DNA of 64,000 nt from Octopus sinensis (taxonomy: Eukaryota): contig NC_043010.1 of the NCBI RefSeq assembly GCF_006345805.1, forward strand, positions 60,636,001 to 60,700,000, in the 5' to 3' direction. The notes under the pieces are model-generated. The model had not been told where the DNA came from, made no database searches, and saw only the letters and a program-made list of their open reading frames with translations. The stretch's first letter is position 1. The number at the start of each line of letters is the position of its first letter. Position numbers and translations under genes: made by a program. This document shows positions 1 to 61,224 of this stretch, piece after piece.

Positions 1-750
1 GTCCAGGTGGGAGCCTGCACCATGCTTCTAAGTGTGTTTGGCATGGTTTTTACAGCTGGATGCCCTTCCTAACACCAACCACTCCATAGAGTGGGCTGAG
101 TGCTTTTTATGTGACACTTGCACAGATGAGGTCAGTTTTGGCATGGTATTTTACAACAGGATGCCCTTCCAAATGCCAATCACTTTACAATCCAGTGTCA
201 TTTCCTCTGTGAGGCAACACATCCTGAGATCAGTTCTCACCATTTCATCCCATGTCTTCCTGGGTCTCCCTTTTCCACAGACACCATCCACTTTCAGTGA
301 CAGACACTTCTTTATACAACTGTCTTCATTCATACACATCACATGTCCAAACCATCATAGTCTTCTCTCTTGCATGCTGCATTTGATTCCTTTTATACCC
401 AACTCTTCTCTCAACACATTTGCGCTTTATCATCCATGCACATTGACACTGCATATCCAGTGGAGCATACCACTGTTGTTCCTCTCTAGTCTACAAGTGT
501 CCTCTGCATTCAGAGCCCATGTCTCACTGCCATGGAGTATAGCTATTCATATACATGCATCATACAATCTACCTTTCAAGCTAAAAGAGAGTCCTTTTGT
601 TGCCAACAGAGGTAATAGCTCTCTGAAATTTCTCCATCCTATTTGTATTCTAGAAACAATACTTTCAGAGCATACACCAACACCCCACCACCCCATTGCT
701 AATTTGGTACCTGTTTATAGCCAGTTACACTGGCCATTGGGGAGTTAGGT
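1..750 (-). mobile_element. Degenerate 3' fragment of RTE-type LINE
   Basis: Minus-strand peptide EDSCIKKCLSLKVDGVCGKGRPRKTWDEMVRTDLR matches the C-terminus of the long RTE in this window; 1-150 matches its 3' UTR. Confidence 0.75.
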
Positions 751-1139
751 ATCCTGGTTATGAACACAATACAGAGCTAGAGATTGCTCTTACTTTCAAG
801 TGTAATCTTTTAGCTACAATTTTTAATATATATAATGTGTGTGTGTGTAAATACACACACACTTTATATGGTCAATTAATTCATAGGTGTTTAATTGTAC
901 TAAATTTTAAAATACTTAGTGTTTCATTTAAACAATGTACTGCATCTGTCCCGACCAATATTTTGGTGAGACTGTGTATCTCAATACAACTAAAACTATT
1001 TGTTCAGTACTTATCAGAGTCAGATGAGCACTGAATCATCGAAACATTGCTTTCGCATAGTGACACATAATATTGTTTTTAAATGAGTTAGTCTGAAAGA
1101 TAAATAATGAGACATATTGATAATTCAGTATAAAAGCTA

Positions 1140-1330
1140 TGAAGGTGATGGGATGGTGGAATTGTTAGCTTGCCAGGCAAAATGCTCAGTGGCATTTCAT
1201 CCATTTTTACATTCTGAGTTCCAATATTGCCAGGGCCAACATAGCATTTCATCCTTTCGGGTTCAATAAATTCAGTACCAATTGAGCACTGGAGTACATG
1301 TAATCAATTTACCCTTTTCCCCAAGTTTGC
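1140..1330 (+). mobile_element. tRNA-type SINE (degenerate)
   Basis: GAATTGTTAGC..GCAAAATGCT..TTCTGAGTTC..TTTCATCCTTTCGGG..AATAAA..AGTACC, shared with 46920-47100, 39140-39270 and 62300-62620. Confidence 0.6.
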
Positions 1331-1497
1331 TTGCAAAATTTGAAACCTGTATAAAAGCTACCATGGTGCTTGTATATTCCACAAAGATAACTCTTACTCA
1401 CTAATGAATGTCACATCAGGAAAAGATGGTTTTTAAATTGTACATTTGGGTATAATAGAATGTATTTACAGATATATATGTGTGTGTGTGTGTATAC

Positions 1498-1536
<39 letters not shown>

Positions 1537-1660
1537 CATATATATATATATATTAACATTGACCTGTTTGCTATTATTTCCATAAGTTATTTTATTTTCA
1601 ATACTGCTGTTGTCTTTTGTAGCAGTTTCTCCTGCTGAAATGTGATGAAGAATTCCAGAC

Positions 1661-4060
1661 ATGACAGCATATATTGGTCTACTGTGTCTTCTACATTTAC
1701 TGATCACCCTTGTACTGTCCATAGATATTACATACCATGTCAAGGAAGAAGACAGTCCTCACACCTATATAGGAGACATTGCTGTTGACTCCAACTTATC
1801 ACACCCTCTCACACATCAACAACACACTCTCATTACATTTACACAACTACAAAGGACAGTCGAGAGTGGTTCTCACTTATTTAATGTCACCAACTCAGGA
1901 AAACTATACACTACTCAAACACTGGATGCTGAGTCTCTGTGTACATACAACAAGGAATGTTCCAGAATAGTTAAAGTAGCAGTGAGGAAAGGAAAGACAT
2001 TTTTAAAAATTCTTAAAATTAAAATATTAATAGAAGACATCAATGATCATTCACCAGAATTTCCAAAGAATGAAATCACAATTCAATTTTTGGAGAGAGA
2101 CTTTGAAGGTTCTAAAATACCCCTTCTAAATGCCATTGATAAAGACATTTCAATAAAGAATTCTCAAATTACATATGTGATTAAGAAAAGTAAGAGAGAA
2201 GTATTTGCACTCTCAATTGAAAAGCGGTATGATGGTGTTTTCATACCTACTCTGACTTTGAAAAGCAAATTAGACAGGGAAGTGAAAGACTCATATATGT
2301 TGACCCTGGAGGCTAAAGATGGAGGGTACCCTCCCAAAACAGCTACACTCAAAGTACACATATCTGTAACAGATGTCAATGATAACATACCTGTATTTTC
2401 ACAGAAATTCTATAACATCTCTATAAATAATTCACATCAAAGACATTTACCAATTCTTACTTTAAAAGCCACAGATCAAGATTCTGGAGACAATGGAAAG
2501 ATTTCTTATCATTTCAACCATAAAACATCCCAAAATATCCAGAAATATTTTGTATTAGATAAGAAAACTGGAGATTTATTTTTACACAATAATTTTCATT
2601 TTAGTAAAAAGCAATCTTATAAATTATTTATTGAAGCACAGGATGAAGGAAATCCACCCTTAAGTTCTGTAACCAAAGTCCAGATTCACATTATTAATAA
2701 CCAAAATACTGCTCCATTGATTAACATAGATTTTGTATCTCCTTTATCAGAGAGCTCAGCAGCAGTTTCAGAAGACAGTGAAGTAGATAGTTTTATAGCT
2801 TATGTTATGGTCACTGACAATGATAGTGGGCCTAATGGTGAGGTTATCTGTGATTTAAAACATGATAAATTTAAACTTGCCAAAATGGATTCTAAAGAAT
2901 ATAAAATGATTGTTAAAGGCCATCTTGACAGAGAAATAAGGGACCACTATAAAGTATCTATTGTGTGTCATGACATGGGGTCACCTCAACTAGAAAGTAA
3001 AAAATATTTCTCTGTCAAAGTAACTGATGTCAATGATGTAGAACCACATTTTACCAAAGAGACTTTCCAATTCCTCACATATGAAAACCAGAAAGTTGAC
3101 TTCCCTATTGGCTTCATCAATGCTACAGACCCTGATCTTGGAGATGGAGGCCAACTTACATATTCTATCATCAATGATAACAACAATGATAACATTCCTT
3201 TCCAACTGACAAAATATGGATTTATTTCTACATCACAACCAATAGATCGAGAAATGAAAGACATCTATAAGTTCAAGGTTTTAGTGAAAGATAATGGAAC
3301 ACCTTCTCTCAATGACACTGCCAATATTGTTATTGAGATTCTAGATAAAAATGATAATGCTCCGTATTTTACGTTTCCTAATAATGACCCTTACAATCTC
3401 GATGTCCACTACCATCCACACAGTAAGAAGGACATCACAATTCTGAGAGCATCTGACAAAGACACTGGAAACAATGCTTTCCTCACATATGGAATACTGA
3501 GATCCAATGATAAAAACCTGTTTACAGTGAACTCACACACTGGTGTGTTATCTTTCTCTCGCACAGTTTACCAAAATGATGCAGGAACATATGAGCTGCA
3601 GTTTATAGTGAAAGACGGTGGTACTCCAGTTCAATCAGCAACAACTGCTATCATACTAACACTGTTTGTTAGTAATGATACATCTCCAATGTTGACTGCT
3701 GTGCCATTCCAGTCTGGTCACGACCTGAATATGACTTGGGTAATTATCATTGTAGCAGCAGCTGTAATACTATCTGTGGCTATCGTAGTGTCCATAACAC
3801 TGTGTGTTTTCAGATGTATTAATCACACAAATAACTCACCCACAACAGCAGAGAATCCCAACTTTCTCTCTCAGACTGAGATGAGACAATTACTGTATCA
3901 GACTAACAATCCTGTTGCAATAACGAGAAATGCAGAAGAGATATTTAACCGAAATCTTCAGACAATAAAATCTAAAAGTCAGTTTTTTCTGGAGATGGAA
4001 CAGACACCAGATGAGTGGAAATTCTCAACAACACAAAGGAGACTTCCACCTGTGCCTCAG
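1661..4060 (+). CDS. Pcdh: Protocadherin C1, large ectodomain exon (signal peptide, EC1-EC6, TM, proximal cytoplasmic tail)
   Basis: Open 800 codons. Hydrophobic leader MTAYIGLLCLLHLLITLVLS; cadherin motifs DINDH, LDRE, DVNDN, ATDQD, DKNDNAP; EC1 C-X5-C (CTYNKEC); TM WVIIIVAAAVILSVAIVVSITLCVF. Phase-0 donor CAG|GTAAAT at 4060/4061; acceptor TTTTGTAG 38 nt upstream of ATG. Symbol is family level only. Confidence 0.97.
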
Positions 4061-4438
4061 GTAAATATATTTTGAAACAATCCAGTTGTTGCATCAAATT
4101 TCTTTACAATATTCCTGCAAACATATTTTATACATCGTGTTTATTTCCATGTTGTGTTCCATTCCTTATGTCTTTGTCATGAAACACAATGGCTTTTTCA
4201 TAATTTTACATTTTACAGAAGAAATAGACAGAATTACATGGACTTCATTAAACTTGTATCTTTGTCTTGTTTATTCTAAGTTTATTTTAATTAACCAAGA
4301 AAAAGTTTATTATAATCTTTCTGCTCATTTTAAATGCATTCCATTCTTGTGTCATACCAGGGACATTCTAGAATATAAATGCACGTGTTTCTTCTTTTTA
4401 ACATTATGCTTCACTCTGCTTTGTTTTCTAATCAACAG

Positions 4439-4827
4439 AGATGTGATTCAATCCATAGTCAAGGACGTCGCACCAGTTCCATCATGTCTTACAACAGTGA
4501 CACCTTAGCATCCCAAAAGGACAGAGAAGCTAGCAAGAGTAATGGCAAGACTAAACCATATGATGAGATACCTGCAGAACCAGGTAACTTTTATCAAAAC
4601 ATAACATATAAATGTAATTGCCTTTATTACTGTAGGACAATATATAATGTTATGCTTAGTGTAATATAAGATCAATGTTTCTATCTTTATATATTGGAGT
4701 TGTTATATTGAAATGTAATTTGTGTTTGTATATTTGATATTTTGCAGAATATACCAATGACAATCCAGTGGCAGCCACAATACTAAAGGGACAACAAATA
4801 CAAGATACCTATCTACAGCCAACATAG
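4439..4827 (+). CDS. Pcdh: C1 cytoplasmic exons 2 (4439-4583) and 3 (4748-4827)
   Basis: AATCAACAG|AGA..CCAG|GTAACT (145 nt, phase 0 to 1), then TTTTGCAG|AA..TAG TAG. Phases chain with exon 1, giving RCDSIHSQGRRTSSIMSYNSDTLASQKDREASKSNGKTKPYDEIPAEP-EYTNDNPVAATILKGQQIQDTYLQPT*. Predicted from splice signals, no transcript evidence. Confidence 0.82.
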
Positions 4828-5344
4828 TAGATGTTCCATGACTATTGTTAAATGATTCTCTCACACACCAAATCTTATACAATACTTTATATTCATATAC
4901 AAATATTAACTCTATGTTACTTTCACACATCACACGTAAAGGGCCTTACAGTGGCATCTACTATGACCCCTTTCTTACATCTCTGATACAATAAATACAA
5001 TAAAAACCTAACTTTATTATAACATAGTACATTATTATAAAAGCATTATTTTACTGTCAGTTGTAGTATAGATATTTCCTTAAGCATAAGTCTATTAATT
5101 TTAGCTTTCCTAAAATAGATTTAATTAATTTAGCTCTTGAATATTGAATTTGTAATGATCAAACATTTTCTATCTTCTCCCTGAAGTTCAGTCTGTTTTT
5201 CTTTTAGAAATTGCTCAATTGTCATCTCATATTAACTTATACAACTTGGATGAAACACAGAAATATAATTATTAATTATTTTAATAGAAGTTCCTTTTTA
5301 CTAAGACTAAATATATAATAAAGTCATACTACTAATTATACCCC

Positions 5345-5960
5345 TGTAAATTATCAAGCTGCTTCAGTGTAACATGAATTCTCTTATTTGCTATGTTTGT
5401 GTGACACAGACATCATTGCAGTCATTTCCTATTGGATGAGAGAGATTTTCTATATTTCTTTCAATATTGAAAGTGAGGCTGATAGCTTTTTTCTTTGTTC
5501 TTCACACACACAATTGTGTGTGTGGAGGACATAGAGTTGTAACTAGCACACACCAGCATCTGGCTAACATCTCACCTCCCACTACATACAGCAACTGTCA
5601 CACTATTATATCAGCAGTTACACAGGAACAGCAGCAGCAGCTGCAGTAACACAGGAACACTATTACAACAGCAGCAGTACCACTATAATACCACTACAGC
5701 AGCAGCAGCAGCAGTTGGAGTGGAACACTACAGCAGGATACACATCATCCATCACACACAACTACAGTGAAGGATTAAACAATGCAGGTAAGTCTCTCTC
5801 TCTCTCTTTCTCTTTATTATCTTTTCATATTCATTATAACATTTATATTATTTGTATTTCTAATGAAAGACAGGGTAAGGATAATATCTAAAATGTCTGC
5901 CATGTTGTATATATACAGGGACTGGGACAGTGGAGGATCGAGAGATCTAGCCATCACTTC
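5345..5960 (+). promoter_or_regulatory. Conserved block 1: putative promoter and non-coding first exon of C2 (donor GT at 5788)
   Basis: Near-identical in all 7 units. Contains CCTATTGG (reverse CCAAT) at ~5428-5435, a (GT)n tract, a CAG-rich segment, then AAACAATGCAG|GTAAGT and (CT)n. Function is inference. Confidence 0.55.
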
Positions 5961-6116
5961 CACCATTAACAACAACTACAGTAATACAATCACTTCAAAC
6001 TGCATTACGCTTTTTAATGTCAGAATCATACCAGACACATTATACAAGAAATATTAAATTATATATATTCCTATGTTATATTTTATATTAAATTTTGGTG
6101 TTGTATAGTCCAAATG

Positions 6117-6200
<84 letters not shown>

Positions 6201-6431
6201 TTGTCAGAAAACATCAATATCCAATAAGACTGGCTGTTAGTATAGTTTCTTTCTGTGTTGTTGTTATAATTCACTAATTTAACCTTAATCTTTATTTAGG
6301 TTTAATGAACTCTAACAGATTACAAATATACCTTTCTATATTCCCTGTTAAATATTCATTATATATGTCTATGTATACAAAAAAATTAAAAAGTTTTTTT
6401 ATTATTATTATTATAATTATTATTATTATTA

Positions 6432-6486
<55 letters not shown>
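6117..6486. repeat. (TA)n and (ATT)n microsatellites
   Basis: Direct reading: 6117-6200 and 6400-6486. Confidence 0.95.
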
Positions 6487-6489
<3 letters not shown>

Positions 6490-8374
6490 TTGACAATAAA
6501 TATAATGTAGTGTATATTTGTTATTTAAGATATATTGTGTGAGATATAAACTGATGATATTGTCGTGTGTTGTTAAGATATATTTATTCTGACAACAAGA
6601 GATGAATGTTGTAGATTTGTTGAGAATTCGTCAAGAATAGTATCATATTCTATGTACAAACTAATATACATTACATTATTATAGTTGTTATTTCATAACA
6701 AAACATTACAGAAATACATGTAGAAGTATAATATAAAACCTGCATATCATATCTAGCAAATAAGATTGAAAATATTTTTGTTTTGATGTATTCAATTTAA
6801 ACTTTCTATATATTACATGGAAATTATTATGGGTTCGTTTCTAGGGGTTTTTTTAACATCTAATATTTTATTATGTCTATCTTTCTTTTATTGTAAAATA
6901 TTTTTGTGCAATTTCATAAATTATTCTTTCATATTAATGTCACTGTGTTCATTTCAATATCAAAAAATGTATTATGAAAAATGTTTCCCACACCCTACAA
7001 CAAAGTACTTTAAGCTCTGTCAGTGTTTGAAATAATGAAACTAATCTCAGCTCTTTTAGAAAAATATTTCTTTCCTTCTTCAGATTCCAACCCACTCAAT
7101 ACTTTCTTTAACACAGAGCTTGGACCATATTATTAGTGCTCCATCCACTCTTGAACATTCACCATCTACCATTTTTTGTTCCCTATGCACATCTTTTCCT
7201 TTGATTTAGTGTTAGCAAAGAACTGGAACAATTTCTTTCACTCTGCGTCTTCTTCATATGCTATTAAACAGTCAGTATTGTTGACATTTTCAATGCAATT
7301 TTGTAAACACTAATGAACCATTCCTACTTCTTGTTCAGCTTTCATTATTATAATTTACATACATTACCACTCAGCTATGCTACTGATATATATATGGAGT
7401 GTTTCACTCAAAGGTCTAACAGACACACAGCTGTCAAATTATTTCTGAAGAGTAACTTTATATGTTAAAAGCAATATTTGGTCTGAGTTTTACACTACAA
7501 GAACCATCTTCTTTTTGCATTGGAACATGGCTGCGACCGTTTTAGACCAGTTTATTCCAATAAATGTAGAGAAACTAGTAGAAAGGGCTTGCTAGTGTTT
7601 ACAAGAGCACACCAAAATCTTATGCCCCTTTTAGCCCCACTGAAATAAGAGAAGGAGGCTGGTGCACTGATCTGGAAAGTATGCCAAATTTAGTGGTGGA
7701 ATTCAGTTACCTGTGGCCAGGTAACTGAAGGTAGACTATACTATTAAGAATTAACAGCTTCTTATGTATTTTAAATGGACACAAATTGCTCTTACACCAT
7801 GTAATAGTTTGTGTGTGTTTGTGTGTGATCTCTATTGGTCACCTTCTCACTACTCACTCTGCATTCACTCTTTCTTGTTCTCTGTGCTATGTCACCTGTG
7901 TTACAAGAGATGTTATTTGACTTACCTGTATCCATATACCCCTACCCCATCCTTATCCTGACATCTCTTGCCCATCATACAATGTATAAGGTATTATGTC
8001 ACACAATACATTCCACCATCATTCTTTTTGTACTGCCAGTCATTTGTCATCACTCTCTTTCCTCAGAACCACTTGTTATTGACATCTGTCACTCACCCTT
8101 ACCATTGTTCTCCTCTATTACCATCCATCACCCTCTCTCAACCTTCAATCACTCTTTTTCTTTTACTATCCTATCGTCCTCTTGCCGTTTGTGTTATGAT
8201 AGACATGACAACCTGCACAAGTGACTAGTGAATGAGTTAAGGCATTCAGCCATAAAACTGTATTTTAACTTCTAAAGACTGGGTTGCCCTCTTCAACCAC
8301 CTGGTCAGCATAAATATAACAGCATCTGTGCCAATCAGTGATTAAGAATGAACAGACTTTAATGTCTATTGTCC

Positions 8375-8635
8375 ATGCTGGCATGGCTTGGATGGTTTGA
8401 CTGAGTACTGGCAAACCAGATGGCTACACCAGGCTCTAATCTGATCTGGCAAGGTTTCTATAGCTGGATGCCCTTCCTAACGCCAACCACTCTGAGAGTG
8501 TAGAGGGTACTTTTTATGTGCCACCAACATGGGCCAATCATGTGGTTCTGGCATCGCCCACACTCAAATGGTGCTTTTTACATGCCACCAGCATATGTGC
8601 CAGTCTGGCGGCACTGGCAATGACCACACTTGAAT
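8375..8635 (-). mobile_element. RTE 3'-end fragment / RTE-tailed SINE
   Basis: CCATGCTGGCATGG..CTGGATGCCCTTCCTAACGCCAACCAC..ATGTGCCACC, matching 9340-9500. Confidence 0.75.
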
Positions 8636-8642
8636 GGTGCTT

Positions 8643-9015
<373 letters not shown>

Positions 9016-9315
9016 AAAATAAGAAAATGGAGAAATACATCGAAATCAAATATCAATTATCAGATAATACTCAATCACATACTTTATTAAACCACCACAT
9101 AAGAAACTATAAGGTTAAACATAATAATGCAGGGTAAAGCAGTGTACATGAAGGAGTGTACATAAAATAGTAATATTATACAATAAGTAGAATACGTATA
9201 ATAGAACATAAATATAAGTACACATAAATACAAATATAGCAGTATATTGGATATATGGTATCCCATGGTGGGTTGCATTTACAACCCCTATCTCAATTTG
9301 AAAATATATATATAT

Positions 9316-12300
9316 CATCATCATCATCATCATCATTTAGCGTCCGTTTTCCATGCTAGCATGGGTTGGACGGTTCAACTGGGGTCTGGGGAGCCCGAAG
9401 GCTGCACCAGGCCAGTCAGATCTGGCAGTGTTTCTACAGCTGGATGCCCTTCCTAACGCCAACCACTCCGAGAGTGTAGTGGGTGATTTATGTGCCACCG
9501 ACACAGGTGCCAGACGAGGCTGGCGAACGGCCACGCTCGGATGGTGTTTTTATGTGCCACCGACACAGGTGCCAGACGAGGCTGGCAGACGGCCACGCTC
9601 GGATGGTGTTTTATGTGCCACCGACACAGGTGCCAGATGAGGCTGGCGGACGGCCACGATCGGATGGTGTTTGTTACGTCCCCAAAGCACGGAGGCCAGT
9701 CTATGCGGTACTGGCTACGGCCACGTTCGGATGATTTTCTTGTGTGCCACCGGCACTGGTACCACAAAGATACAAATTCCATTTATGTTCATCTATTTTG
9801 ATTTGTTTTGATTTGATTTGATTTTCACTTGCCTCAACAGGTCTTCACAAGTGTCACAAGAAGGAAGGTATGCACAGGTGGACTGACTACGTCGCCGGGT
9901 CTTCGGATGGTGTCTTTATGTGCCACCGACACAGGTGCCAGATGTGGCTGGCGAACAGCCACGATCGGATGGTTTTCTTGTGTGCCACCGGTACTGGAAC
10001 CACAAAGATACAAATTCCATTGATGTTCATCTATTTTGATTTGGTTTGATTTTCACTTGCCTCAACAGGTCTTCACAAGTGTCACGCGTGTCACACACTT
10101 GCCTCAACAGGTCTCCACAAGTGTCACACACTTGCCTCTGCCTCAACAGGTCTTCACAAAGTGTCACACACTTGCCTCTGCCTCAACAGGTCTTCACAAG
10201 TGTCATAAGAGGGAAGGTATGCACAGGTGGACTGACTACGTCGCCGGGTCTTTGGATGGTGTTTTTATGTGCCACCGACACAGGTGCCAGGTGAGGCTGG
10301 CGAACGGCCACGATCAGATGGTGTTTGTTGTGCCCACAGCACGGAGGCCAGTCGATGCGGTACCAGCTACGGCCACGTTCGGATGGTTTTCTTGTGTGCC
10401 ACCGGTACTGGAACCACAAAGATACAAATTCCATTGATATTCATCTATTTTGATTTGGTTTGATTTCCACTTGCCTCAACAGGTCTTCACAAGGGTCACA
10501 CACTTGCCTCAACAGGTCTTCACAAGTGTCATAAGAGGGAAGGTATGCACAGGTGGACTGACTACATCGCCGGGTCTTCGGATGGTGTCTTTATGTGCCA
10601 CCGACACAGGTGCCAGACGAGGCTGGCAGACGGCCACGCTCGGATGGTGTTTTTATGTGCCACCGACACAGGTGCCAGATGAGGCTGGCGGACGGCCACG
10701 ATCGGATGGTGTTTGTTACGTCCCCAAAGCACGGAGGCCAGTCTATGCGGTACTGGCTACGGCCACGTTCGGATGATTTTCTTGTGTGCCACCGGCACTG
10801 GTACCACAAAGATACAAATTCCATTTATGTTCATCTATTTTGATTTGTTTTGATTTGATTTGATTTTCACTTGCCTCAACAGGTCTTCACAAGTGTCACA
10901 AGAAGGAAGGTATGCACAGGTGGACTGACTACGTCGCCGGGTCTTCGGATGGTGTCTTTATGTGCCACCGACACAGGTGCCAGATGTGGCTGGCGAACAG
11001 CCACGATCGGATGGTTTTCTTGTGTGCCACCGGTACTGGAACCACAAAGATACAAATTCCATTGATGTTCATCTATTTTGATTTGGTTTGATTTTCACTT
11101 GCCTCAACAGGTCTTCACAAGTGTCACGCGTGTCACACACTTGCCTCAACAGGTCTCCACAAGTGTCACACACTTGCCTCTGCCTCAACAGGTCTTCACA
11201 AAGTGTCACACACTTGCCTCTGCCTCAACAGGTCTTCACAAGTGTCATAAGAGGGAAGGTATGCACAGGTGGACTGACTACGTCGCCGGGTCTTTGGATG
11301 GTGTTTTTATGTGCCACCGACACAGGTGCCAGGTGAGGCTGGCGAACGGCCACGATCAGATGGTGTTTGTTGTGCCCACAGCACGGAGGCCAGTCGATGC
11401 GGTACCAGCTACGGCCACGTTCGGATGGTTTTCTTGTGTGCCACCGGTACTGGAACCACAAAGATACAAATTCCATTGATATTCATCTATTTTGATTTGG
11501 TTGGGTCACACACTTGCCTCAACAGGTCTCCACAAGTGTCACACACTTGCCTCTGCCTCAACAGGTCTTCACAAGTGTCACACACTTGCCTCAACAGGTC
11601 TTCACAAGTGTCATAAGAGGGAAGGTATGCACAGGTGGACTGACTACATCGCCGGGTCTTTGGATGGTGTCTTTATGTGCCAGATGAGGCTGGCGAACGG
11701 CCACGATCGGATGGTGTTTGTTGTGCCCACAGCACGGAGGCCAGCCGATGCGGTACTGGTTACGGCCACGTTTGAGTGGTTTTCTTGTGTGCCACCGGCA
11801 CTGGTACCACAAAGAATACAATTCCACTGATGTTCATCTATTTTGATTTGTTTTGATTTGATTTGATTTCACTTGCCTCAACAGGTCTTCATAAGTGTCA
11901 CAAGAAGGAAGGTATGCACAGGACTGACTACGTCCCAGGTCGGGGCCACGGGTTATGGCCTGACTAGTCTTGCCGGGTCTTCTCATGCACAGCATACTTC
12001 CATAGGTCTCGGTCTCTAGACATTTCCTTAGTGAGACCTAAAGTTCGAAGGTCGTGCTTCACCACCTCGTCCCAGGTTTTCCTGGGTCTACCTCTTCCAC
12101 AGGTTCCCTCCACTGCTAGGGTGTAGCACTTTTGCACACAACTATCTTCAGCCTTTCTTGTCACATGACCATACCAGCGCAGCCGTCTCTCTTGCACGCC
12201 ACAACTGACGCTTCTTAGGTTCAACTTTTCTCTCAAGGAACTTACACTCTGACGATTATGAACACTGACATTACACATCCATCGGAGCATACTGGCTTCA

Positions 12301-15033: not shown

Positions 15034-15078
15034 ATATATATATATATATGAATGTGTGTGTATATATACATTATATAC

Positions 15079-15472
15079 ATACAAGGTGGTGTTAAATAGT
15101 TCCTGGACTAATTTTGTTGTGCAAAATGGCAGTATACAGTTGCATGTGCAGTGAGAGCTAGCAGTGACCTTTATGAGGCTGTGTAGTGAGTAACATAACT
15201 GGGTTTACTTCACAAGTTGTTAAATTTGTGTTTTTGTGATCACATGTTTGCAGTAGTCTGTGATTTTTTCATAGTCAGGAAGTTGGAACAAAAAAACTGT
15301 TGTGAAATTTTGCATTAAACTTAGGAAGTCTACTACAGAGACATTGAGCATGCTTCTGCAATCTTATGGCAATGAGGCAATGGGTTATATGCAATATTTC
15401 AAGTCACACAAGTACTTTAAAAGTGGAAGAACATCCCTGAAAGACAATGAACAATCTGGAAGACTTGCCACT
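15079..15472 (+). mobile_element. Tc1/mariner transposon 5' relic
   Basis: ~15305-15470 reads KFCIKLRKSTTETLSMLLQSYGNEAMG..FKSGRTSLKDNEQSGRL, resembling the mariner transposase N-terminal HTH region. Confidence 0.65.
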
Positions 15473-19384: not shown

Positions 19385-19569
19385 GTAAATATTATTTTGG
19401 ATAATTGATGTTTTTTTGTTTATTATTATAAAGGTAGAAGTATTTTATCCATTATTCACGTATGTACAGTCATTACTGCAAATAAACTCAGCTTCAGTCC
19501 CTCAGACTGTTTTATTAGGAGTGATCTAAACTTGTATTTATACAAGATTCCACTTTCTATAATCAACAG

Positions 19570-19957
19570 AGATGTGATTCAATCCATAGTCAAGAACGTC
19601 GTACCAGTTCCATCATGTCTTACAACAGTGACACCTTAACATCCCAAAAGGACAGAGAAGCTAGCAAGAGTAATGGCAAGACTAAACCATATGATGAGAT
19701 ACCTGCAGAACCAGGTAACTTTTATCAAAACATAACATATAAATGTAATTGCCTTTATTACTGTAGGACAATATATAATGTTATGCTTAGTGTAATACAA
19801 GATCAATGTTTCTATCTTTATATATTGGAGTTGTTATATTGAAATGTAATTTGTGTTTGTATATTTGATATTTTGCAGAATATACCAATGACAATCCAGT
19901 GCAGCCACAATACTAAAGGGACAACAAATACAAGATACCTATCTACAGCCAACATAG
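19570..19957 (+). CDS. Pcdh: C2 cytoplasmic exons 2 (19570-19714) and 3 (19879-19957; 1-nt deletion near 19900)
   Basis: Paralogous to the C1 exons with the same splice sites. Exon 3 reads CCAGTGCAGCC versus CCAGT(G/T)GCAGCC in five other copies (C3 CCTGTTGCAGCC), which shifts the tail to ..NPVQPQY* as assembled. Confidence 0.75.
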
Positions 19958-20809
19958 TAGATGTTCCATGACTATTGTTAAATGATTCTCTCACACACCA
20001 AATCTTATACAATACTTTATATTCATATAAAAATATCAACTCTATGTCTCTTTCACCCATCACACACATAAAGGGCCTTACAGTGGCATCTATTATGACC
20101 CCTAATTTACGTCTTTGATTTAGTAAATATTACAAACACCTTACTCTACATTACCATACTACATTATTATAAAATAATTTTTTTACTTTCATTTTGGTAT
20201 AGGCATTTCACTAAACATAGATAACTTCATCTGAGTCATCCTAGAATGTCTAATTGTAGCATCTTTTAGTTTAACACCAATTCTAACATGTATCTTCTGC
20301 TGTTCTACTTTTATTTACAACTTTTCTCTTAGCATTTCCTTTCTGTATAACCTCTAGAAATACTTTTACTAATTACCATCCTTATAGATGGATATTTCTT
20401 GAAGGCGTAAATAGCTCACCTCTAAAAGTAAAGATAGCATACCACCAACGCCTAATCAATTTGGAATTTTTGTTAAATTTTAAAATTGAATAGTTTCATC
20501 TTTTATGAAGTCAAAATATTGAAGATAAATTTAAATATTTCCGGAATGTTCATTTTTGCTTTCAAAGTAATTAATTTGGATAAATTTTCATTTCCACAAT
20601 TAAAACTGGTTTTATTTAAACTTAAAATAAACTTTTGAAATGATAAAAGTTTAACTGTCTCTACTAAAATTTACATCTTTCTGAAAAAAGGTGTAAAATT
20701 ATATAAGTAGTTAATAATAAAGTTTGTATTTTTTCTACAAATTTATAATTTTCTAACACTAAATATTTAAGTAGTAATATTATGATATGTAAACTGTCAA
20801 TCCACTACA

Positions 20810-23384: not shown

Positions 23385-23421
<37 letters not shown>

Positions 23422-23426
23422 TATAA

Positions 23427-23512
<86 letters not shown>
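23385..23512. repeat. (TA)n/(CA)n microsatellite
   Basis: Direct reading. Confidence 0.95.
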
Positions 23513-26018: not shown

Positions 26019-26186
26019 GTAAATATTATTTTGGATAATTGATGTTTTTTTGCTTATCATTATAAAGGTAGAAGTATTTTATCCATTATTCATCTATGTA
26101 CAGTTATTACTGCAAAAAAACTCAACTTGGTCCCTCAGACTGTTTTATTAGCTGTAATCTAAACTTACTTTTTCTATAATCAACAG

Positions 26187-26575
26187 AGATGTGATTCAAT
26201 CCATAGTCAAGAACGTCGTACCAGTTCCATCATGTCTTACAACAGTGACACCTTAACATCCCAAAAGGACAGAGAAGCTAGCAAGAGTAATGGCAAGACT
26301 AAACCATATGATGAGATACCTGCAGAACCAGGTAACTTTTATCAAAACATAACATATAAATGTAATTGCCTTTATTACTGTAGGACAATATATAATGTTA
26401 TGCTTAGTGTAATACAAGATCAATGTTTCTATCTTTATATTGAGTTGTTAGTGTTATTGAAATGTAATTTGTGTTTGTATATTTGATATTTTCAGAATAT
26501 ACCAATGACAATCCTGTTGCAGCCACAATACTAAAGGGACAACAAATACAAGATACCTATCTACAGCCAACATAG
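26187..26575 (+). CDS. Pcdh: C3 cytoplasmic exons 2 (26187-26331) and 3 (26496-26575)
   Basis: Same splice sites, lengths and TAG TAG stop as C1. Confidence 0.78.
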
Positions 26576-27109
26576 TAGATGTTCCATGACTATTGTTAAA
26601 TGAGTCTCTCACACACCAAATCTTATACAATACTTTATATTCATATAAAAATATCAACTCTATGTTTCTTTCACACATCACACATAAAGGGCCTTGCAGT
26701 GGCATATATTATGACCCCTAATTTACGTCTTTGATTTAGTAAATATTACAAACACCTTACTCTACATTACCATACTTGACTATTATAAAATAGTAATATT
26801 ACTCTATGTTGGTACAGATATTTTACTAAGTATAAACCAATTAATTTTAGTTATCTTACAATGGATTTAATTAATTTATCTCTTGTCTATTTAATTCATT
26901 ACAGTCAAACATTTTCTATCACTTCTCTGAAGTTTAGTCAGTTTTTTTTTTGTTTTTTTTTGTTATAGGAATTGAGAAATTAATGAATTATCATCTCATA
27001 TTAAATGTTATAAAACTCAGCTGAAACGAACAAATATAATTATAAATTTTTTAATAGAAATTCCTTTTTAAGACTAAGTATGTAATAAAGTCATATTTAG
27101 TATAATATC

Positions 27110-28826: not shown

Positions 28827-29045
28827 ATCATCATCATCATCGTTTAACGTCCGCTTTCCATGCTAGCATGGGTTGGACGGTTCAACTGGGGTCTGGGAAG
28901 CCAGAAGTTTGCACCAGGCCCAGTCTGATCTGGCAGGGTTTCTACAGCTGGATGCCCTTCCTAATGCCAACCACTCCGTGAGTGTAGTGGGTGCTTTTTA
29001 CGTGCCACCGGCACAGGTGTCAGACGAGGCTGGCAAACGGCCACG
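28827..29045 (-). mobile_element. RTE 3'-end fragment / RTE-tailed SINE
   Basis: (CAT)n-CGTTTAACGTCCG..GGATGCCCTTCCT, matching the long element's 3' end. Confidence 0.8.
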
Positions 29046-35576: not shown

Positions 35577-35760
35577 GTAAATATTATTTTGGATAATTGA
35601 TGTTTTTTTGCTTATTATTATGAAGGTACAAGTATTTTATCCATTATTCATCTATGTACAGTTATAACTACAAAGAACTCAACTTCAGTCCCTCAGACTG
35701 TTTTATTAGGAGTGATCTAAACTTGTATTGATATAAGATTCCTTTTTCTATAATCCACAG

Positions 35761-36149
35761 AGATGTGATTCAATCCATAGTCAAGAACGTCGCACCAGTT
35801 CCATCATGTCTTACAACAGTGACACCTTAACATCCCGAAAGGACATAGAAGCTAGCAAGAGTAATGGCAAGACTAAACCATATGATGAGATACCTGCAGA
35901 ACCAGGTAACTTTTATCAAAACATAACATATAAATGTAATTGCCTTTATTACTGTAGGACAATATATAATGTTATGCTTAGTGTAATACAAGATCAATGT
36001 TTCTATCTTTATATATTGGAGTTGTTATGTTGAAATGTAATTTGTGTTTGTATATTTGATATTTTGCAGAATATACCAATGACAATCCAGTTGCAGCCAC
36101 AATACTAAAGGGACAACAAATACAAGATACCTATCTACAGCCAACATAG
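35761..36149 (+). CDS. Pcdh: C4 cytoplasmic exons 2 (35761-35905) and 3 (36070-36149)
   Basis: Same splice sites, lengths and stop as C1. Confidence 0.8.
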
Positions 36150-36689
36150 TAGATGTTCCATGACTATTGTTAAATGATTCTCTCACACACCAAACCTTAT
36201 ACAATACTTTATATTCATATAAAAATATCAACTCTATGTTTCTTTCACACATTACACACATAAGAGGCCTTGCAGTGGCATTTATTATGACCCCTAATTT
36301 ACATCTCTGATCCATTAAATACTAGAAACACTATACTCTACATTACCATACTAGATTATTATAAAATAGTAATTTTACTCTATGTTGGTACAGATATTTT
36401 ACTAAGTATAAACCAATTAATTTTAGTTATCTTACAATGGATTTAATTAATTTATCTCTTGTTTATTTAATTCATTACAGGCAAACATTTTCTATCACTT
36501 CTCTGAAGTTTAGTCAGTTCTTTTTTCGTTTTTGTTTTTTTTTTGTTATAGAAATTGAGAAATTAATGAATTATCATCTCATATTAAATGTTATAAAACT
36601 CAGCTGAAACAAAGAAATATAATTATAAATTTTTTAATAGAAATTCCTTTTTAAGACTAAGTATGTAATAAAGTCATACTAATGTTAAT

Positions 36690-39139: not shown

Positions 39140-39270
39140 TTTCAAATTTTGACTCAATCGAGGGAGGGGGCCAAGTTGATTACGTCAACCCCAGTGCTCA
39201 ACTGGTACTTACTTAATTGACTCCAAAAGGATGAAAGGCAAAGTCAACCTTGATGGAATTTGAACTCTAA
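39140..39270 (-). mobile_element. tRNA-type SINE fragment
   Basis: ACCCCAGTGCTCAACTGGTACTT..AAAGGATGAAAGGCAAAGTCAACC..ATTTGAACTC, the reverse complement of the family above. Confidence 0.6.
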
Positions 39271-40480: not shown

Positions 40481-40696
40481 TCCCATTTTTTTCCCATTTT
40501 TTCTCTAGACATATATTCCATTACAGATTGGCACATCAGAAATATCATTTTTAATTCTTCAGTGAGTATTTAGAGATGGAAATTATATTTGTGCACTGGT
40601 TATTAAAATTTATCATATTTTCATTTTTTAGACATAAAATATTTCTTTTCTTTTGTAGAAATATCTCCTGCTAAAGTGTGATGAAGAATTCCAGAC

Positions 40697-43096: not shown

Positions 43097-43433
43097 GTAA
43101 ATATTATTTTAATTGATTTTTCGGAAATGATATATCACAGATGTGGTTATAACAGTTATGTTCTAGTTTGTATATTTTTTCCTTTCCTTTCTAGAAATGT
43201 AAAAGCTTTCCTATCAATTTACACCTTTCAGAATAAGTAGAATTACTTCATTTAACAACTAAACTTGTTTCTCTAATTCTTTTACACAAATAAATTGTTG
43301 AATATTAATATTTCTGTTGGTGTGATTCTATTACTCTTCCTTGTGTCTTACCTGGGGCATTCTAGAATATAAATGCAAATGTTTCTTCTTTTTAAACTAA
43401 TGATTCACTCTGCTTTGTTATTCCAATCAACAG

Positions 43434-43822
43434 AGATGTGATTCAATCCATAGTCAAGAACGTCGCACCAGTTCCATCATGTCTTACAACAGTGACACCT
43501 TAACATCCCAAAAGGACAGAGAAGCTAGCAAGAGTAATGGCAAGACTAAACCATATGATGAGATACCTGCAGAACCAGGTAACTTTTATCGAAACATTAC
43601 ATATAAATGTAATTGCCTTTATTACTGCAGGACAATATATAATGTTATGCTTAGTGTAATATAAGATCAATGTTTCTATCTTTATACATTGGAGTTGTTA
43701 TATTGAAATGTAATTTGTGTTTGTATATTTGATATTTTGCAGAATATACCAATGACAATCCAGTGGCAGCCACAATACTAAAGGGACAACAAATACAAGA
43801 TACCTATCTACAGCCAACATAG
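43434..43822 (+). CDS. Pcdh: C5 cytoplasmic exons 2 (43434-43578) and 3 (43743-43822)
   Basis: Same splice sites, lengths and stop as C1. Confidence 0.82.
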
Positions 43823-44609
43823 TAGATGTTCCATGACTATTGTTAAATGATTCTCTCACACACCAAATCTTATACAATACTATATATACAGATAAAAATA
43901 TCAACTCTATGTTTCTTTCACACATCACACACGTAAGGGGCCTTACAGTTGCATCACTTATGACTCCTAATTTCCATCTCCGGTACATTAATTGTTACAA
44001 ACACGCAGCTCTACATTACCATAGTTAATTATTATAGTTATTTTCCCGTCAGTTTCAGTATAGACATTTCACTAAGCATAGATAAATTAGTCTGAGTCTT
44101 CCTCGATGGTTTAATTATATTGTTTTCATTTGACACCAATTCTAAATTGTACTATCGATTATTTCACAATTTTTTCTCTTAGCCTTTACTCATTGTATCA
44201 ACTTAAGAAGTACTTTTACAAATTACCATCCTCATAGATAGATAGTTGTTGTTGACCTCTAAAATTAAAGATTGCATACTACAAAAACCTACTCATTTTT
44301 GAACTTTTGTTAAATTTTAAAATTGATCAAATATTGAAGATAAATTAGAATATTTCTGGAAAATCATTTTTTCCTTCAAAATAATTCATTTGGAAATATT
44401 TTTATTTCTATGATTAAATTAGATTTATTTAAATTTTATTTAAAATAAACTTTAAAAATAGACAAACTTTTACTGTCTGTAATAAAATGTACATCTTTTT
44501 TTAAAAAAAAGGTGTCAAATTATGTTATAATACATTTGTATTTTTCATGTAAACTTTTAATTTCTGGACAGAAAATATGTAATATATTGTTATTATTACA
44601 TATCAACTA

Positions 44610-45903: not shown

Positions 45904-45968
<65 letters not shown>

Positions 45969-50751: not shown

Positions 50752-52303
50752 GTAAATATTATTTTGAATATTTTCCATTTTAAGACAAAAATATTTACAC
50801 TGGTGCATATATAAATGTGCGTATGTATGTAATTGTTTGTTTGAGTGAATTAAATTACTCAATAAACTAGAATGACCCTCCAATATACCTCATACAAAGA
50901 TATGGAATATTTCTTACATGTCACCTTGTAATCATCCTCATCTTTGTTTAACGTCCGCTTTAAACGATGATGATGATGATGATAACAAGGTGACATGTGA
51001 GAAATATTCCATCTCTTTGTATATATTTCAATTAGGTATATGATATTTTGCCCCTTGAAATGACACTTTCATTTCCATAACACAAAGCAATTATGAATCT
51101 ATAATTATATAATTATAATTAATATCTATAATTCTGAAACAATCAGTTCCTTGTAAAATTCAGAGATATTGAAATGTAATATTCTTTTTTCTCTTGTGTA
51201 TTGCAAATTTGAATCATGTCTGTTAATTCATTGGAAATATTTGCAATATTGGTGATGTCTAAATATTCTAAAAGAGTTTTAATTATTTATCTGGTCTATA
51301 AAAATGACAATGTTTTAGTCATTTGCATCTAGCTTCTGTTTTGGTTACTTTGATTTCCAATTAATTATAAATGAAGATGAAAATATATTTTCATCTCTAA
51401 AGTTGGGGTTAATAATCTGACAAATCTTATTCAAAAAATATATTTTAAATACATTTGTATTAATTAAAGTAATATTTCATATTTATACTCTTGTTACATT
51501 TAATTCATTAATGGTTACTGCAGATAATTAAACTAGTTTATTCTAGTTTTAATTGTATCATCAGAACATTATTGGATACTCTCTGCCAATATGGTTGGTC
51601 AAAGTTGTATCAGAGTGTTTGAACGTCTTTCAGTCTTGATTGATGACAAAGTTTGATTTTATAAGGTTCCAAATTATAATTATAAGGGTAAGAAATATGT
51701 TGGTTTTCATGAGAGGTGTTTATTTTGGACATTTATTCAATAAGAAACTTGAAATAGCTGCAGAATTCACTATCAGGTCATGGAATTATTATCCTATGGG
51801 AATACTTGAAATCAAAGAAGATTTTCTGCCTCTGAAAACTTTTTATTTTTCAAGTGATCTACAACAGGATTGAGCCAGAATTAATTTTCGTTTCTCTCAT
51901 ACAAAAAGTCAATCCCAGAATGTCAGATTCCTCTTCTTCACAACATCAGAAGAACTTATCAAAGCCCATCAACTTCACTGAAGGATTTTTGCCAAAACAG
52001 ACCACCACCAGTTCCTGTGGCATCTGCATGGTATTAGTTATTAGAACAATGTGTAATATCTCTAACTGAGAATCAAACCTCACTTACAAATACAACTGAC
52101 TGGAGTTTAACTTCTATTCTATGGAACTTAAAAGCCAACAATGGTATTTCTTTCTTCAAACTCTGAGATTTATTCTAAATGTGTACACACACTATTTTAA
52201 AATTTCACCTGCATATATTTCTATTATAGATGAACATTTTTCTTCCTAATGTTTCTGTTATATTATTTTTCAACATTGTTTCACTCTGTTTTCTAATCAC
52301 CAG

Positions 52304-52692
52304 AGATGTGATTCAATCCATAGTCAAGGACGTCGCACCAGTTCCATCATGTCTTACAACAGTGACACCTTAACATCCCAAAAGGACAGAGAAGCTAGCA
52401 AGAGTAATGGCAAGACTAAACCATATGATGAGATACCTGCAGAACCAGGTAACTTTTATCAAAACATAACATATAAATGTAATTGCCTTTATTACTGTAG
52501 GACAATATATAATGTTATGCTTAGTGTAATACAAGATCAATGTTTCTATCTTTATATATTGGAGTTGTTATATTGAAATGTAATTTGTGTTTGTATATTT
52601 GATATTTTGCAGAATATACCAATGACAATCCAGTTGCAGCCACAATACTAAAGGGACAACAAATACAAGATACCTATCTACAGCCAACATAG
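52304..52692 (+). CDS. Pcdh: C6 cytoplasmic exons 2 (52304-52448) and 3 (52613-52692)
   Basis: Same exons as the other copies, after an enlarged ~1.55 kb intron 1. Confidence 0.82.
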
Positions 52693-53489
52693 TAGATGTT
52701 CCATGACTATTGTTAAATGATTCTCTCACACACCAAATCTTATACAATACTTTATATTCATATGAAAAATATCAACTCTATGTTTCTTTCATACATCACA
52801 CATAAAGGGCCTTACATTGGCATCTGTTATGACCCCTAATTTACATTTCTGATGCATTAAATACTAGAAACACCTTACTTTATATTACCATAGTACATTA
52901 GTATAAAATAATTATTTTACTTTCATTTTGGTATAGGCATTTCACTAAACATAGATAACTTTATCTGAGTCATCCTAGAATGTTTAATTATAGTATCTTT
53001 TAGTTTAACACCAATTCTAACATGTATCTTCTGCTGTTTTACCTTTATTTACAACTTTTGTCTTTGCATTTTTTTTTCTATATCAACTCTAAAAGTAGTT
53101 TTACAAATTACCAGATTGATAATTATTTTAGAGAAATAGCATACTACAAACACCTTATCATATTTGAACTTTTGTTGAATTTTGAAATTGCAAAGTTTCT
53201 TTTACAAAGTCAGATATTGAAGATAAATTAGAATATTTCTAGAAAATAGCTTCAGCATTCAAAATAATTAATTTGGAAATATTTTCATTTCCACACTTAA
53301 AATTAGGTTAATTTAAACTTTAATTAAAATGAACTTTAAAAGTGATCAAATTTTGGTTGTCTTTACTAAAATTTACATCTCTCTGCAGAAATATTTAAAA
53401 TTGTATAATAATAAGTTTTGTATTTTTCATGTAAATTTTTAATTTCTGAACAGAAAATATGTAATATATTGTTATTATTACATATCAAC

Positions 53490-59841: not shown

Positions 59842-60217
59842 GTAAATATTATTTTTCAACAAATTACTTTTTGTATAATAAATTTGTGTCTGTCATTTTC
59901 TGGGAATGGTCTCTCAAAAATAAGGACTTCTTTTTCTTTTGCAAGAAATGAAATAGCTTTTCCTTAATTTCACATTATACTGAATAAGTAGAAATATTTT
60001 CATTTGACCAGTAAACATATTTGTATTGTTTCTCTAATTTTTTATACTAACAACTTGTTTAATTATAAAAATTCTGTTGTTATGATTCTACCATTCGCAA
60101 ATTGCTATTCGTAAAAGGATTACATTGTTTTGTCATAGCAGGAACATTCTAGAATATAAATATAAATGTTTCTTTTATTTAATGCTATTCATTCTGCTTT
60201 GTTATTCTAATCACCAG

Positions 60218-60606
60218 AGATGTGATTCAATTCATAGTCAAGGACGTCGTACCAGTTCCATCATGTCTTACAACAGTGACACCTTAACATCCCAAAAGGA
60301 CAGAGAAGCTAGCAAGAGTAATGGCAAGACTAAACCATATGATGAGATACCTGCAGAACCAGGTAACTTTTATCAAAACATAACATATAAATGTAATTGC
60401 CTTTATTACTGTAGGACAATATATAATGTTATGCTTAGTGTAATACAAGATCAATGTTTCTATCTTTATATATTGGAGTTGTTATATTGAAATGTAATTT
60501 GTGTTTGTATATTTGATATTTTGCAGAATATACCAATGACAATCCAGTTGCAGCCACAATACTAAAGGGACAACAAATACAAGATACCTATCTACAGCCA
60601 ACATAG
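60218..60606 (+). CDS. Pcdh: C7 cytoplasmic exons 2 (60218-60362) and 3 (60527-60606)
   Basis: Same splice sites, lengths and stop as C1. Confidence 0.8.
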
Positions 60607-61224
60607 TAGATGTTCCATGACTATTGTTAAATGATTCTCTCACACACCAAATCTTATACAATACTTTATATTCATATGAAAAATATCAACTCTATGTTTC
60701 TTTCACACATCACACACATAAGGGGCCTTACAGTGGCATCTATTATGACCCCTAATCTCCATCTCTGGTAAATTAATTGTTACAAACACCCAACTCTACA
60801 TTACCATAGTTAATTATTATAGTTATTTTCCCGTCAGTTTTAGTATAGACATTTCACTAAGCATAGATAAATTAGTCTGAGTCATCCTCGGAAGTTTAAT
60901 TATATTGTTTTCATTTGACACCAATTCTAAAATGTACTTTCGTTTGTTTACCTTTATTTCCAACTTTTCTCTTAGCTTTTTCTCATTTATCAACTCAAGA
61001 AGTAATTTATCCCTCACATTGATAAAACATTCTCTATTTTCCCTTGAAAGTTTAGTCAAATTTTTTTCATAGAAATTACTGAATTGTCATCTGATAGTAA
61101 AAGTTATACAACTTGCATGATGCTAAGAAATATAATTATAAAATTATAAATTTTTTAATAGAAATTCCTTTTTACTAAGACTAAATATATAATAAAGTTA
61201 TACTACTAATTATACCCCTGTAAA

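Follow-up and report, generated by a model that had tools for sequence, protein, structure and literature searches.

How can neighbouring protocadherin genes end in almost the same cytoplasmic tail when each of them owns the exons that encode it? The question is raised by a 64-kb stretch of Octopus sinensis chromosome CM016872.1 (approximately positions 60,636,001-60,700,000; hereafter the window, whose own numbering is used below), in which seven protocadherin genes, C1-C7, lie head-to-tail, all on the plus strand. We conclude that these genes are very likely old tandem paralogs in which several blocks have been kept near-identical by interlocus gene conversion and other segments have diverged. 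The array comprises at least nine genes of one subfamily, seven inside the window and two further copies, C8 (partial) and C9, in a locus 4.6 kb past the window end (L002). It was compared with arrays of Octopus vulgaris (L003, OX597827.1) and Argonauta hians (L001 and L005, six genes).

Gene architecture and map of the repeat unit

The spliced C1 product has 874 residues and shows the combination expected of a protocadherin: cadherin repeats, one membrane helix (the hydrophobic stretch WVIIIVAAAVILSVAIVVSITLCVF in the translation) and a cytoplasmic tail. Pfam assigns the Cadherin family (2.8e-74) to five stretches and Cadherin_2 to the N-terminus. The top database matches are named protocadherin beta-15-like, from Octopus, and one RefSeq protein of that name (XP_036365295.1) is identical to the spliced C6 protein model. 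Every unit possesses its own big exon, a 145-nucleotide (nt) exon and an 80-nt terminal coding exon, so that the locus is a tandem array of whole genes. The sizes of the two small exons and of the 164-nt intron between them are constant in all seven copies, and all introns are of the GT..AG type. Because each gene carries a full set of tail exons with intact splice sites, the tail is not made common through splicing. The parts of the first unit, with extracellular cadherin repeats numbered EC1-EC6 and untranslated regions abbreviated UTR, are as follows.

1623..1960, plus strand: start of the C1 big exon (38 nt of 5'UTR; signal peptide and most of EC1), homogenised
1661-4060, plus strand: C1 big coding exon (2400 nt), ATG at 1661
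1961..2710, plus strand: C1 variable segment, exon nt 301-1050 (end of EC1, EC2 and EC3)
2711..4060, plus strand: C1 homogenised 3' part of the big exon (EC4-EC6, transmembrane helix and proximal cytoplasmic part)
4061..4438, plus strand: C1 intron 1, 378 nt, long type
4439..4583, plus strand: C1 145-nt exon, first part of the cytoplasmic tail, used in RefSeq models
4584..4747, plus strand: C1 intron 2, 164 nt
4748..4827, plus strand: C1 terminal coding exon, 80 nt including the stop codon TAG
4828..4930, plus strand: C1 homogenised start of the 3'UTR
5400..5975, plus strand: third homogenised block (about 575 nt, non-coding), downstream of C1

Whole genes are ~95% identical between copies, and this average hides sharply different segments. 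A sequence-only reading of the window had described the 145-nt exon, the intron of about 164 nt and the 80-nt coding end in all seven genes, and they are indeed present throughout at 97-99% identity (mean pairwise values of 98.4% for exon 2, 97.4% for intron 2 and 99.2% for exon 3). The same reading had extended the homogenised block through about 150 nt of 3'UTR. The UTR is homogeneous at its start, where mean identity is 96.9% over positions +1..100, and identity falls to 81% over +101..200 and to ~67% beyond; therefore the homogeneous part measures only about 100 nt.

Intron 1 had been read as marking a conversion boundary. It is not the border of a variable exon with a constant region, and the big exon is not variable as a whole. 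Across the seven copies the exon varies only at nt 301-1050 (81-95% identity per 150-nt window); its first 300 nt are homogenised too (98.4-98.9%), and its last 1350 nt (nt 1051-2400) are already 96.8-99.8% identical. The actual border between variable and constant sequence is inside the big exon, near nt 1050, at the EC3/EC4 junction. Given the near-identity of the 3' end of the big exon, intron 1 forms an unconverted island between two converted tracts. Homogenisation also extends into the intergenic DNA: the block at 5400-5975 and its six counterparts are 97.5-100% identical across the seven intergenic regions, with diverged DNA on both sides. Since homogeneous blocks alternate in this way with diverged DNA, the repeat unit is a patchwork of homogeneous blocks and old spacers.

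The loss of intron 1 identity soon after the donor and its return at the acceptor were as first described: across types only GTAAATAT(T)ATTTT at the donor (~14 nt) and ~12 nt at the acceptor are common. The three length types were likewise confirmed, at 168-185 nt in C2/C3/C4, 337-378 nt in C1/C5/C7 and 1552 nt in C6. Mutual identity is 91-92% in the short group and 68% in the long group, although C1 and C5 share 88% over their last 92 nt. The C6 intron has only ~40 nt in common with the C1/C5/C7 group, at its 3' end, and the C2 intron matches the long-type introns of C5 and C6 only over the first ~22-29 nt. The type of intron 1 shows no linkage to variants of the flanking exons. The corresponding segments of the other copies are listed here.

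19385..19569, plus strand: C2 intron 1, 185 nt, short type
19570..20057, plus strand: C2 tail block (from exon 2 through intron 2 and exon 3 into the first ~100 nt of UTR)
26019..26186, plus strand: C3 intron 1, 168 nt, short type
26187..26675, plus strand: C3 tail block, with a small internal rearrangement in intron 2
35577..35760, plus strand: C4 intron 1, 184 nt, short type
35761..36249, plus strand: C4 tail block
43097..43433, plus strand: C5 intron 1, 337 nt, long type
43434..43922, plus strand: C5 tail block
50752..52303, plus strand: C6 intron 1, 1552 nt
52304..52792, plus strand: C6 tail block
59842..60217, plus strand: C7 intron 1, 376 nt, long type
60218..60706, plus strand: C7 tail block

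A repeat or transposon common to other sites in the window was considered as the source of intron 1 and rejected: only the other intron 1 copies match, apart from an internal hairpin of C6. This hairpin-forming inverted repeat (50892-51022; 130 nt, 82% self-complementary) may be a small foldback element.

Silent divergence and the age of the copies

Synonymous (dS) and nonsynonymous (dN) divergence was calculated by the Nei-Gojobori method with Jukes-Cantor correction. Among paralogs, dS is 0.42 in nt 301-1050 (dN/dS 0.22) and 0.016-0.019 in nt 1-300 (0.019) and nt 1651-2400, and the contrast inside this single exon amounts to 25- to 75-fold. The values per domain, obtained from three intact Octopus copies and three Argonauta copies with EC borders placed by eye from the DxNDxxPxF linkers, are given below as dS among Octopus paralogs followed by dS between Octopus and Argonauta.

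EC1: 0.089; 0.31
EC2: 0.68; 0.85
EC3: 0.36; 0.73
EC4: 0.096; 0.40
EC5: 0.041; 0.27
EC6: 0.039; 0.24
Transmembrane and cytoplasmic part of the big exon: 0.009; 0.37
Tail exons: 0.014; 0.20

Paralog dS in some segments is a small fraction of that elsewhere in the same gene and is also below the dS between species, which is the relation that characterizes concerted evolution. As Octopus and Argonauta differ at dS 0.20-0.40 in the constant segments, silent sites there are free to change and are alike only within a genome. The tail also differs little in protein sequence among Octopus paralogs (dN 0.008) as compared with Octopus versus Argonauta (0.12). That the common tail arose by duplication plus homogenisation had been proposed from the sequence, and the proposal stands: every gene has its own tail exons, and these differ at dS 0.014 between paralogs as against 0.20 between species. 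It is well supported that the tails are alike through homogenisation and not through recent duplication or constraint. The dN/dS of 0.22 in the variable part, in turn, means that there was no recent burst of divergence with positive selection.

The identity of 68% among the C1/C5/C7 introns equals the Jukes-Cantor expectation for a dS of 0.42. Between O. sinensis and O. vulgaris the orthologous introns are 99.7% (C5) and 98.5% (C6) identical, hence intron 1 is not hypermutable. Its divergence reflects the true neutral age of the paralogs. Whole-gene distances badly underestimate that age, and the dating of a 'recent burst' of octopod protocadherins (PMC9795677) is likely to be confounded for arrays like this one.

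Comparison with Argonauta separates the history of the lineages from that of the homogenised segments. Genes of two subfamilies, A and B, occur in both Octopus and Argonauta and differ by tails that are unrelated (RCDSIHSQ... in A, IYNKQV... in B), which shows that A and B separated before the two species did. Within a species the tails of A and B share 33-35% identity, while tails of the same subfamily are 75% (A) or 68% (B) identical between species. From EC6 to the transmembrane helix the relation is reversed: A and B are 91% identical within Octopus and 99% within Argonauta, and members of the same subfamily are 84-86% identical between species. The maximum-likelihood tree of EC2-EC3 supports the A/B split at 100/100, mixes the species within A and contains one cross-species clade (96/93). 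The tree of EC5 to the transmembrane helix separates Octopus from Argonauta at 100/100 and mixes A with B. Grouping by species in the homogenised segments and by lineage in the others is the classical signature of concerted evolution. Since EC5 to the transmembrane helix is common to both subfamilies and the tails are unrelated, exchange crosses the subfamily borders and stops before the cytoplasmic part. The second subfamily is represented by P0024, P0025 and P0034 in Octopus and by P0027 and P0029 in Argonauta, all of which share EC5 to the transmembrane helix with the window subfamily of their own species.

Traces of the exchange are found within the array itself. In the four-gamete test, the seven copies show incompatibility at 58% of informative site pairs, and the pairwise homoplasy index (PHI) test for recombination is significant (p=0.0015), so that the copies are mosaics. 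The O. vulgaris array contains collinear orthologs of C5, C6 and C9, with intron 1 lengths of 337, 1489 and 365 nt and near-identical copies of intron 2. When L003 is aligned with window positions 38512-54208 and with L002 positions 5702-13682, the C9 ortholog comes immediately after C5 and C6; O. vulgaris lacks the C7-C8 pair, so the two sister species differ in copy number. Identity between the C5 orthologs is 97.5-100% over their whole length. Those of C6 are 98.5-98.9% identical in intron 1 and flank and only 92.3% in the variable part. In nt 901-1050 of its big exon, the O. vulgaris 'C9' differs from O. sinensis C2 at 3 sites and from its positional ortholog at 30. The tract concerned is:

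17885-18034 of the window, matching 21492-21641 of L003: conversion tract, C2 exon nt 901-1050, 150 nt

A tract of ~150 nt in the variable part has moved since O. sinensis and O. vulgaris separated. The variable parts of four further O. vulgaris proteins (P0001, P0002, P0006 and P0009) are not encoded in the window.

Intron 2 behaves differently in the two genera. It measures 164 nt in all nine O. sinensis copies (the seven of the window, C8 and C9), whereas in the six Argonauta genes it ranges from 118 to 670 nt and is 52-86% identical (~71% overall), next to an exon 2 that is 97% identical. Octopus and Argonauta copies of intron 2 share 71-78% identity. The homogeneity of intron 2 is specific to the Octopus lineage, and the intron is not conserved for its own sake. 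The earlier statement that intron 2 is homogenised and intron 1 is not thus describes Octopus correctly and fails as a rule for the family. No Argonauta counterpart of the Octopus intron 1 was found, while intron 2 does align across the two species.

An RNA function for intron 2 or the tail was also considered. Intron 2 and the stretch 4439-4930 fold no better than shuffled sequences (z -0.26 and +0.31), and the Rfam search with intron 2 and the tail (4439-4930) gave no credible match; on these grounds the candidate was rejected.

One Argonauta hians model, P0011 (953 residues), contains two tandem exon 2 peptides with a 26-residue read-through between them. At the DNA level this spacer starts with GT.. 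and ends with ..CAG, which suggests that exon 2 was duplicated by unequal exchange.

Probable gene conversion, proposed escape and the rival explanations

The most probable mechanism starts from old paralogs, as indicated by EC2-EC3, intron 1 and most spacer DNA, which stand at dS ~0.4-0.7 or ~68% identity. Repeated non-reciprocal copying between genes would homogenise separate blocks of each unit. In the big exon these are the first ~300 nt and the last ~1350 nt, the latter from EC4 to the proximal cytoplasmic part; the others are the tail block, which runs from exon 2 through intron 2 and exon 3 to 100 nt of UTR, and the putative promoter/5'UTR block of ~575 nt. Occasional unequal crossing-over would alter copy number. 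The outcome is a 'constant region' in effect, formed by homogenised, physically separate copies rather than by common exons. Homogenisation of non-coding sequence too, in intron 2, the 100 nt of UTR and the block at 5400-5975, supports the action of conversion.

Length variation tracks escape: Octopus intron 2 has one length and is homogeneous, whereas Argonauta intron 2 and intron 1 of both species are variable in length and diverged. From this correlation we infer that indels and accumulated mismatches block conversion tracts. They would stop tracts arriving from either flank from crossing intron 1, after which divergence would sustain itself and a segment would be either locked in or escaped for good. 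Octopus intron 2, free of length differences and within a short block, is therefore passively carried along; Argonauta intron 2 would have gained indels and escaped as well. The diversity of EC2-EC3 is presumably due to selection for distinct recognition specificities, and short tracts still shuffle these repeats. Sequence-dependent escape from conversion is reportedly the subject of models by Walsh in 1987 and by Teshima and Innan in 2004. Our array resembles the cases treated there in that converted and escaped segments alternate and the escaped ones carry indels and large length differences; that work comprises theory and cases in other gene families, and what the array offers is the correlation between length variation and escape.

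Other processes could make the copies look alike. Recent tandem duplication, with young copies whose EC2-EC3 diverged fast under positive selection, would explain the ~95% whole-gene identity and agrees with the 'recent burst 8-14 Ma' (million years ago) dated for octopod protocadherins from whole-gene distances (PMC9795677). We consider it extremely improbable: EC2-EC3 shows dS of 0.36-0.68 at dN/dS 0.22, divergence in intron 1 and the spacers has reached neutral saturation, the diversity of EC2-EC3 goes back as far as the separation of Octopus and Argonauta and includes one supported cross-species clade, and O. vulgaris has positional orthologs. The similarity might instead reflect purifying selection at the nucleotide level on the constant blocks, with RNA structure, regulatory elements or substrates of RNA editing as its targets. 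Editing is extensive in cephalopod transcripts and constrains the sequence around edited sites, which speaks for such selection, as does the 97-100% identity of intron 2, the 100 nt of UTR and the non-coding block. Yet the same blocks have diverged between species (dS 0.2-0.4; intron 2 at 71-78%), the Argonauta paralogs have diverged copies of intron 2, folding energies do not leave the shuffle level (z -0.26 and +0.31), and Rfam offers no match, so this explanation is very unlikely. Copies collapsed or homogenised by read polishing would produce a purely artificial uniformity; polishing is difficult in multi-copy regions, and the 1-nt homopolymer deletions in C2, C3, C4 and C7 do resemble long-read errors. 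However, intron 1, the variable segment and the flanks are private to each copy, the same exon pattern recurs in Argonauta, and an independent O. vulgaris assembly based on Oxford Nanopore (ONT) reads (PMC10700109) is collinear, with matching intron 1 sizes and near-identical intron 2, which leaves an assembly artefact with next to no probability.

Two further alternatives concern the agent of homogenisation. Unequal crossing-over of whole units, as the main homogeniser in place of short-tract conversion, is unlikely in our estimate. It does change copy number, as the absence of the C7-C8 pair from O. vulgaris and the tandem exon 2 duplicate in an Argonauta gene model indicate, but it would also homogenise EC2-EC3, intron 1 and the spacers, where instead homogeneous and diverged blocks alternate within 3 kb; moreover, mosaics of tract size (~150 nt) are present. 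Conversion templated by RNA through complementary DNA (cDNA), and confined to exons, would account for identity that stops ~14 nt past the donor and ~12 nt before the acceptor of intron 1 and for the Argonauta genes, whose three coding exons are homogeneous and both introns are not. This process would not reach Octopus intron 2, the ~190 nt after the 5'UTR exon or the presumed promoter DNA, all of which are homogenised, and its usual result, intron loss, is seen in none of the nine Octopus and six Argonauta genes; we therefore regard it as highly improbable.

Several points weigh against interlocus gene conversion of old paralogs as formulated here. The cause of the escape of intron 1 is itself deduced from the pattern, and no conversion tract was directly seen to cross or end at this intron. 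The C2/C3/C4 introns are alignable and yet only 91-92% identical, with flanks at ~99%; the escape model is thus incomplete, and heterology alone is not a full explanation. To assume that the short intron type has fewer compatible donors would be an ad hoc addition. In Argonauta, homogeneity hugs the exon edges (exon 2 at 97%, the adjoining introns at 57% and 71%), and this is not predicted by simple long-tract DNA conversion. Finally, 1-nt deletions occur in four of the seven copies, which raises the possibility of pseudogenes among them or of errors in the assembly.

Because of these deletions, not every copy is intact as assembled. The frame is broken in exon 3 of C2 (~19900) and in the big exon of C3 (24835, 25473, 25704 and 25803), C4 (35119) and C7 (57543, 58994 and 59057). 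Each deletion falls in a short homopolymer, and substitutions have not created an in-frame stop in any copy; the deletions may be errors of long-read assembly or mark young pseudogenes. When a pseudogene signature was sought in the copies with deletions, the private synonymous and nonsynonymous counts were too small to tell.

Gene models and comparison with known protocadherin clusters

The non-coding block appears to belong to the gene that follows it. In all seven intergenic regions it contains the donor AATGCAG|GTAAGT, at 5787/5788 in the first and at 21227, 27568, 37143, 45051, 53936 and 61668 in the others, and the acceptor TTTTGTAG is kept 38 nt upstream of the ATG in all seven genes. 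About 190 nt of the intron 3' of the putative 5'UTR exon are homogenised as well. A RefSeq model splices 5618-5787 to the acceptor before C2, in support of the view that the block supplies the 5'UTR exon of the following gene; the block probably comprises promoter and 5'UTR exon, with the predicted promoter just upstream of the exon. In Argonauta the block is in the same relative place, with 69-71% identity to Octopus and 83-86% among the Argonauta copies. Five bases before the block donor lies an ATG that would open a short upstream frame ending just before the main ATG.

Some RefSeq models join neighbouring genes. XP_029645448.2 corresponds to C1 extended from a cryptic donor in exon 3 (TA|GTAGAT at 4826/4827, two bases into the C1 stop codon) through window positions 5618-5787 to the acceptor before the C2 ATG. 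Other models are a two-gene fusion of 1794 residues and a multi-gene model of 3333 residues. Positions 4826/4827, 5618-5787 and 16947, the proteins P0127 and P0128 and positions 1-5471 of locus L004 are associated with these conjoined models. Such models may reflect read-through transcription or be artefacts of gene prediction, and they give a hint of read-through only. Poly(A)-like hexamers are present between each stop codon and the block.

It is conceivable, if improbable, that the array is used like a vertebrate variable/constant locus. Selection would then keep the promoter block and the tail alike, giving each gene equal regulatory entry and equal cytoplasmic output, and in read-through transcripts a big exon could be joined to tail exons that belong to a gene further downstream. 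Were this so, physically separate tails would be interchangeable in practice.

Vertebrate Pcdh-alpha and Pcdh-gamma are said to combine variable with constant exons, an organisation reportedly described by Wu and Maniatis in 1999. The octopus genes are similar in that six cadherin repeats, the membrane helix and the proximal cytoplasmic part all come from a single large exon, while a common C-terminus comes from small exons downstream of it. Unlike in the vertebrate clusters, constant exons belong to each gene (seven sets in 64 kb), long-range cis-splicing is not involved, and no single set of constant exons serves all variable exons. The 575-nt block before each octopus gene is a candidate for the kind of separate promoter that stands before each variable exon in vertebrate clusters.

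Clustered protocadherins of vertebrates have their highest dS in EC2/EC3 and their lowest in EC5/EC6 (Etlioglu et al. 2016, PMC4978886), and EC2-EC3 are the specificity domains and bear phylogenetic signal (PMC4978886). Conversion spares EC2-EC3 and acts on EC4-EC6, according to the statement in PMC4978886 that cites Noonan 2004; the dS comparison domain by domain used here is also the one applied there. The octopus array shows the same gradient of dS per domain in an independent lineage, with a ratio of highest to lowest dS of ~75 as against 2.5-5.4 in Xenopus and comparable values in mouse (PMC4978886). The domain pattern parallels the vertebrate one, with EC2-EC3 free and EC4 to the tail homogenised; unlike vertebrate conversion, however, octopus conversion also covers the downstream exons, an intron, part of the 3'UTR and the promoter-proximal block. 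A design of variable recognition and common signalling is possible without common exons and independently of vertebrates.

Tandem protocadherin arrays of cephalopods were, reportedly, described by Albertin and colleagues in 2015. Later descriptions show whole-gene duplicates without common constant exons (PMC9068888, PMC6339937), and the present locus likewise has its genes, each complete and with several exons, arranged head-to-tail on a single chromosome (Albertin et al. 2022, PMC9068888; Styfhals et al. 2019, PMC6339937). Homogenisation by gene conversion or recent duplication has already been proposed for the similarity of cephalopod genes (PMC9068888, PMC6339937), and the literature treats the cephalopod expansion as convergent with that of vertebrates. 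The general idea is thus in the literature, and the fine pattern was not found described there: in PMC9068888 and PMC6339937 we found neither the map of homogenised parts and the contrast of dS between domains nor the intron 1 island, the homogenised intron 2 and promoter block or the exchange between subfamilies. We regard the array as a new example of a known process, to which it adds the ~75-fold contrast, the non-coding blocks, the exchange between subfamilies, the intron 1 island and a dated tract between sister species.

For practical work, short reads cannot assign tails or other constant parts to genes, and gene predictors fuse neighbours. Long reads can be phased by diagnostic sites that are few but present: GGA/GAA at 4464, GCA/ACA at 4508 and RKDIE in C4, all of which had been proposed as markers from the sequence and were found again. 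Further variants suited to phasing lie at exon nt 1740, 1866 and 2352 of the big exon and, in the tail, at 4471 (C/T) and 4770 (G/T).

The spacers contain several other elements. A minus-strand open reading frame (12721-15084, 787 residues) encodes endonuclease and reverse transcriptase domains of a non-LTR (long terminal repeat) retrotransposon; lying in a G+C-richer stretch at 10-16 kb, it accounts for the unusually long gap of 12 kb between C1 and C2. An interspersed repeat of ~100 nt, 77-83% identical between copies, occurs in the spacers on both strands (15-128, 8424-8524, 9423-9509, 16617-16694, 28931-29019, 40055-40132 and 46326-46431). Long (GT)n/(CA)n-like tracts are found at 1460-1553, 6120-6200, 8760-9015 and 23390-23510.

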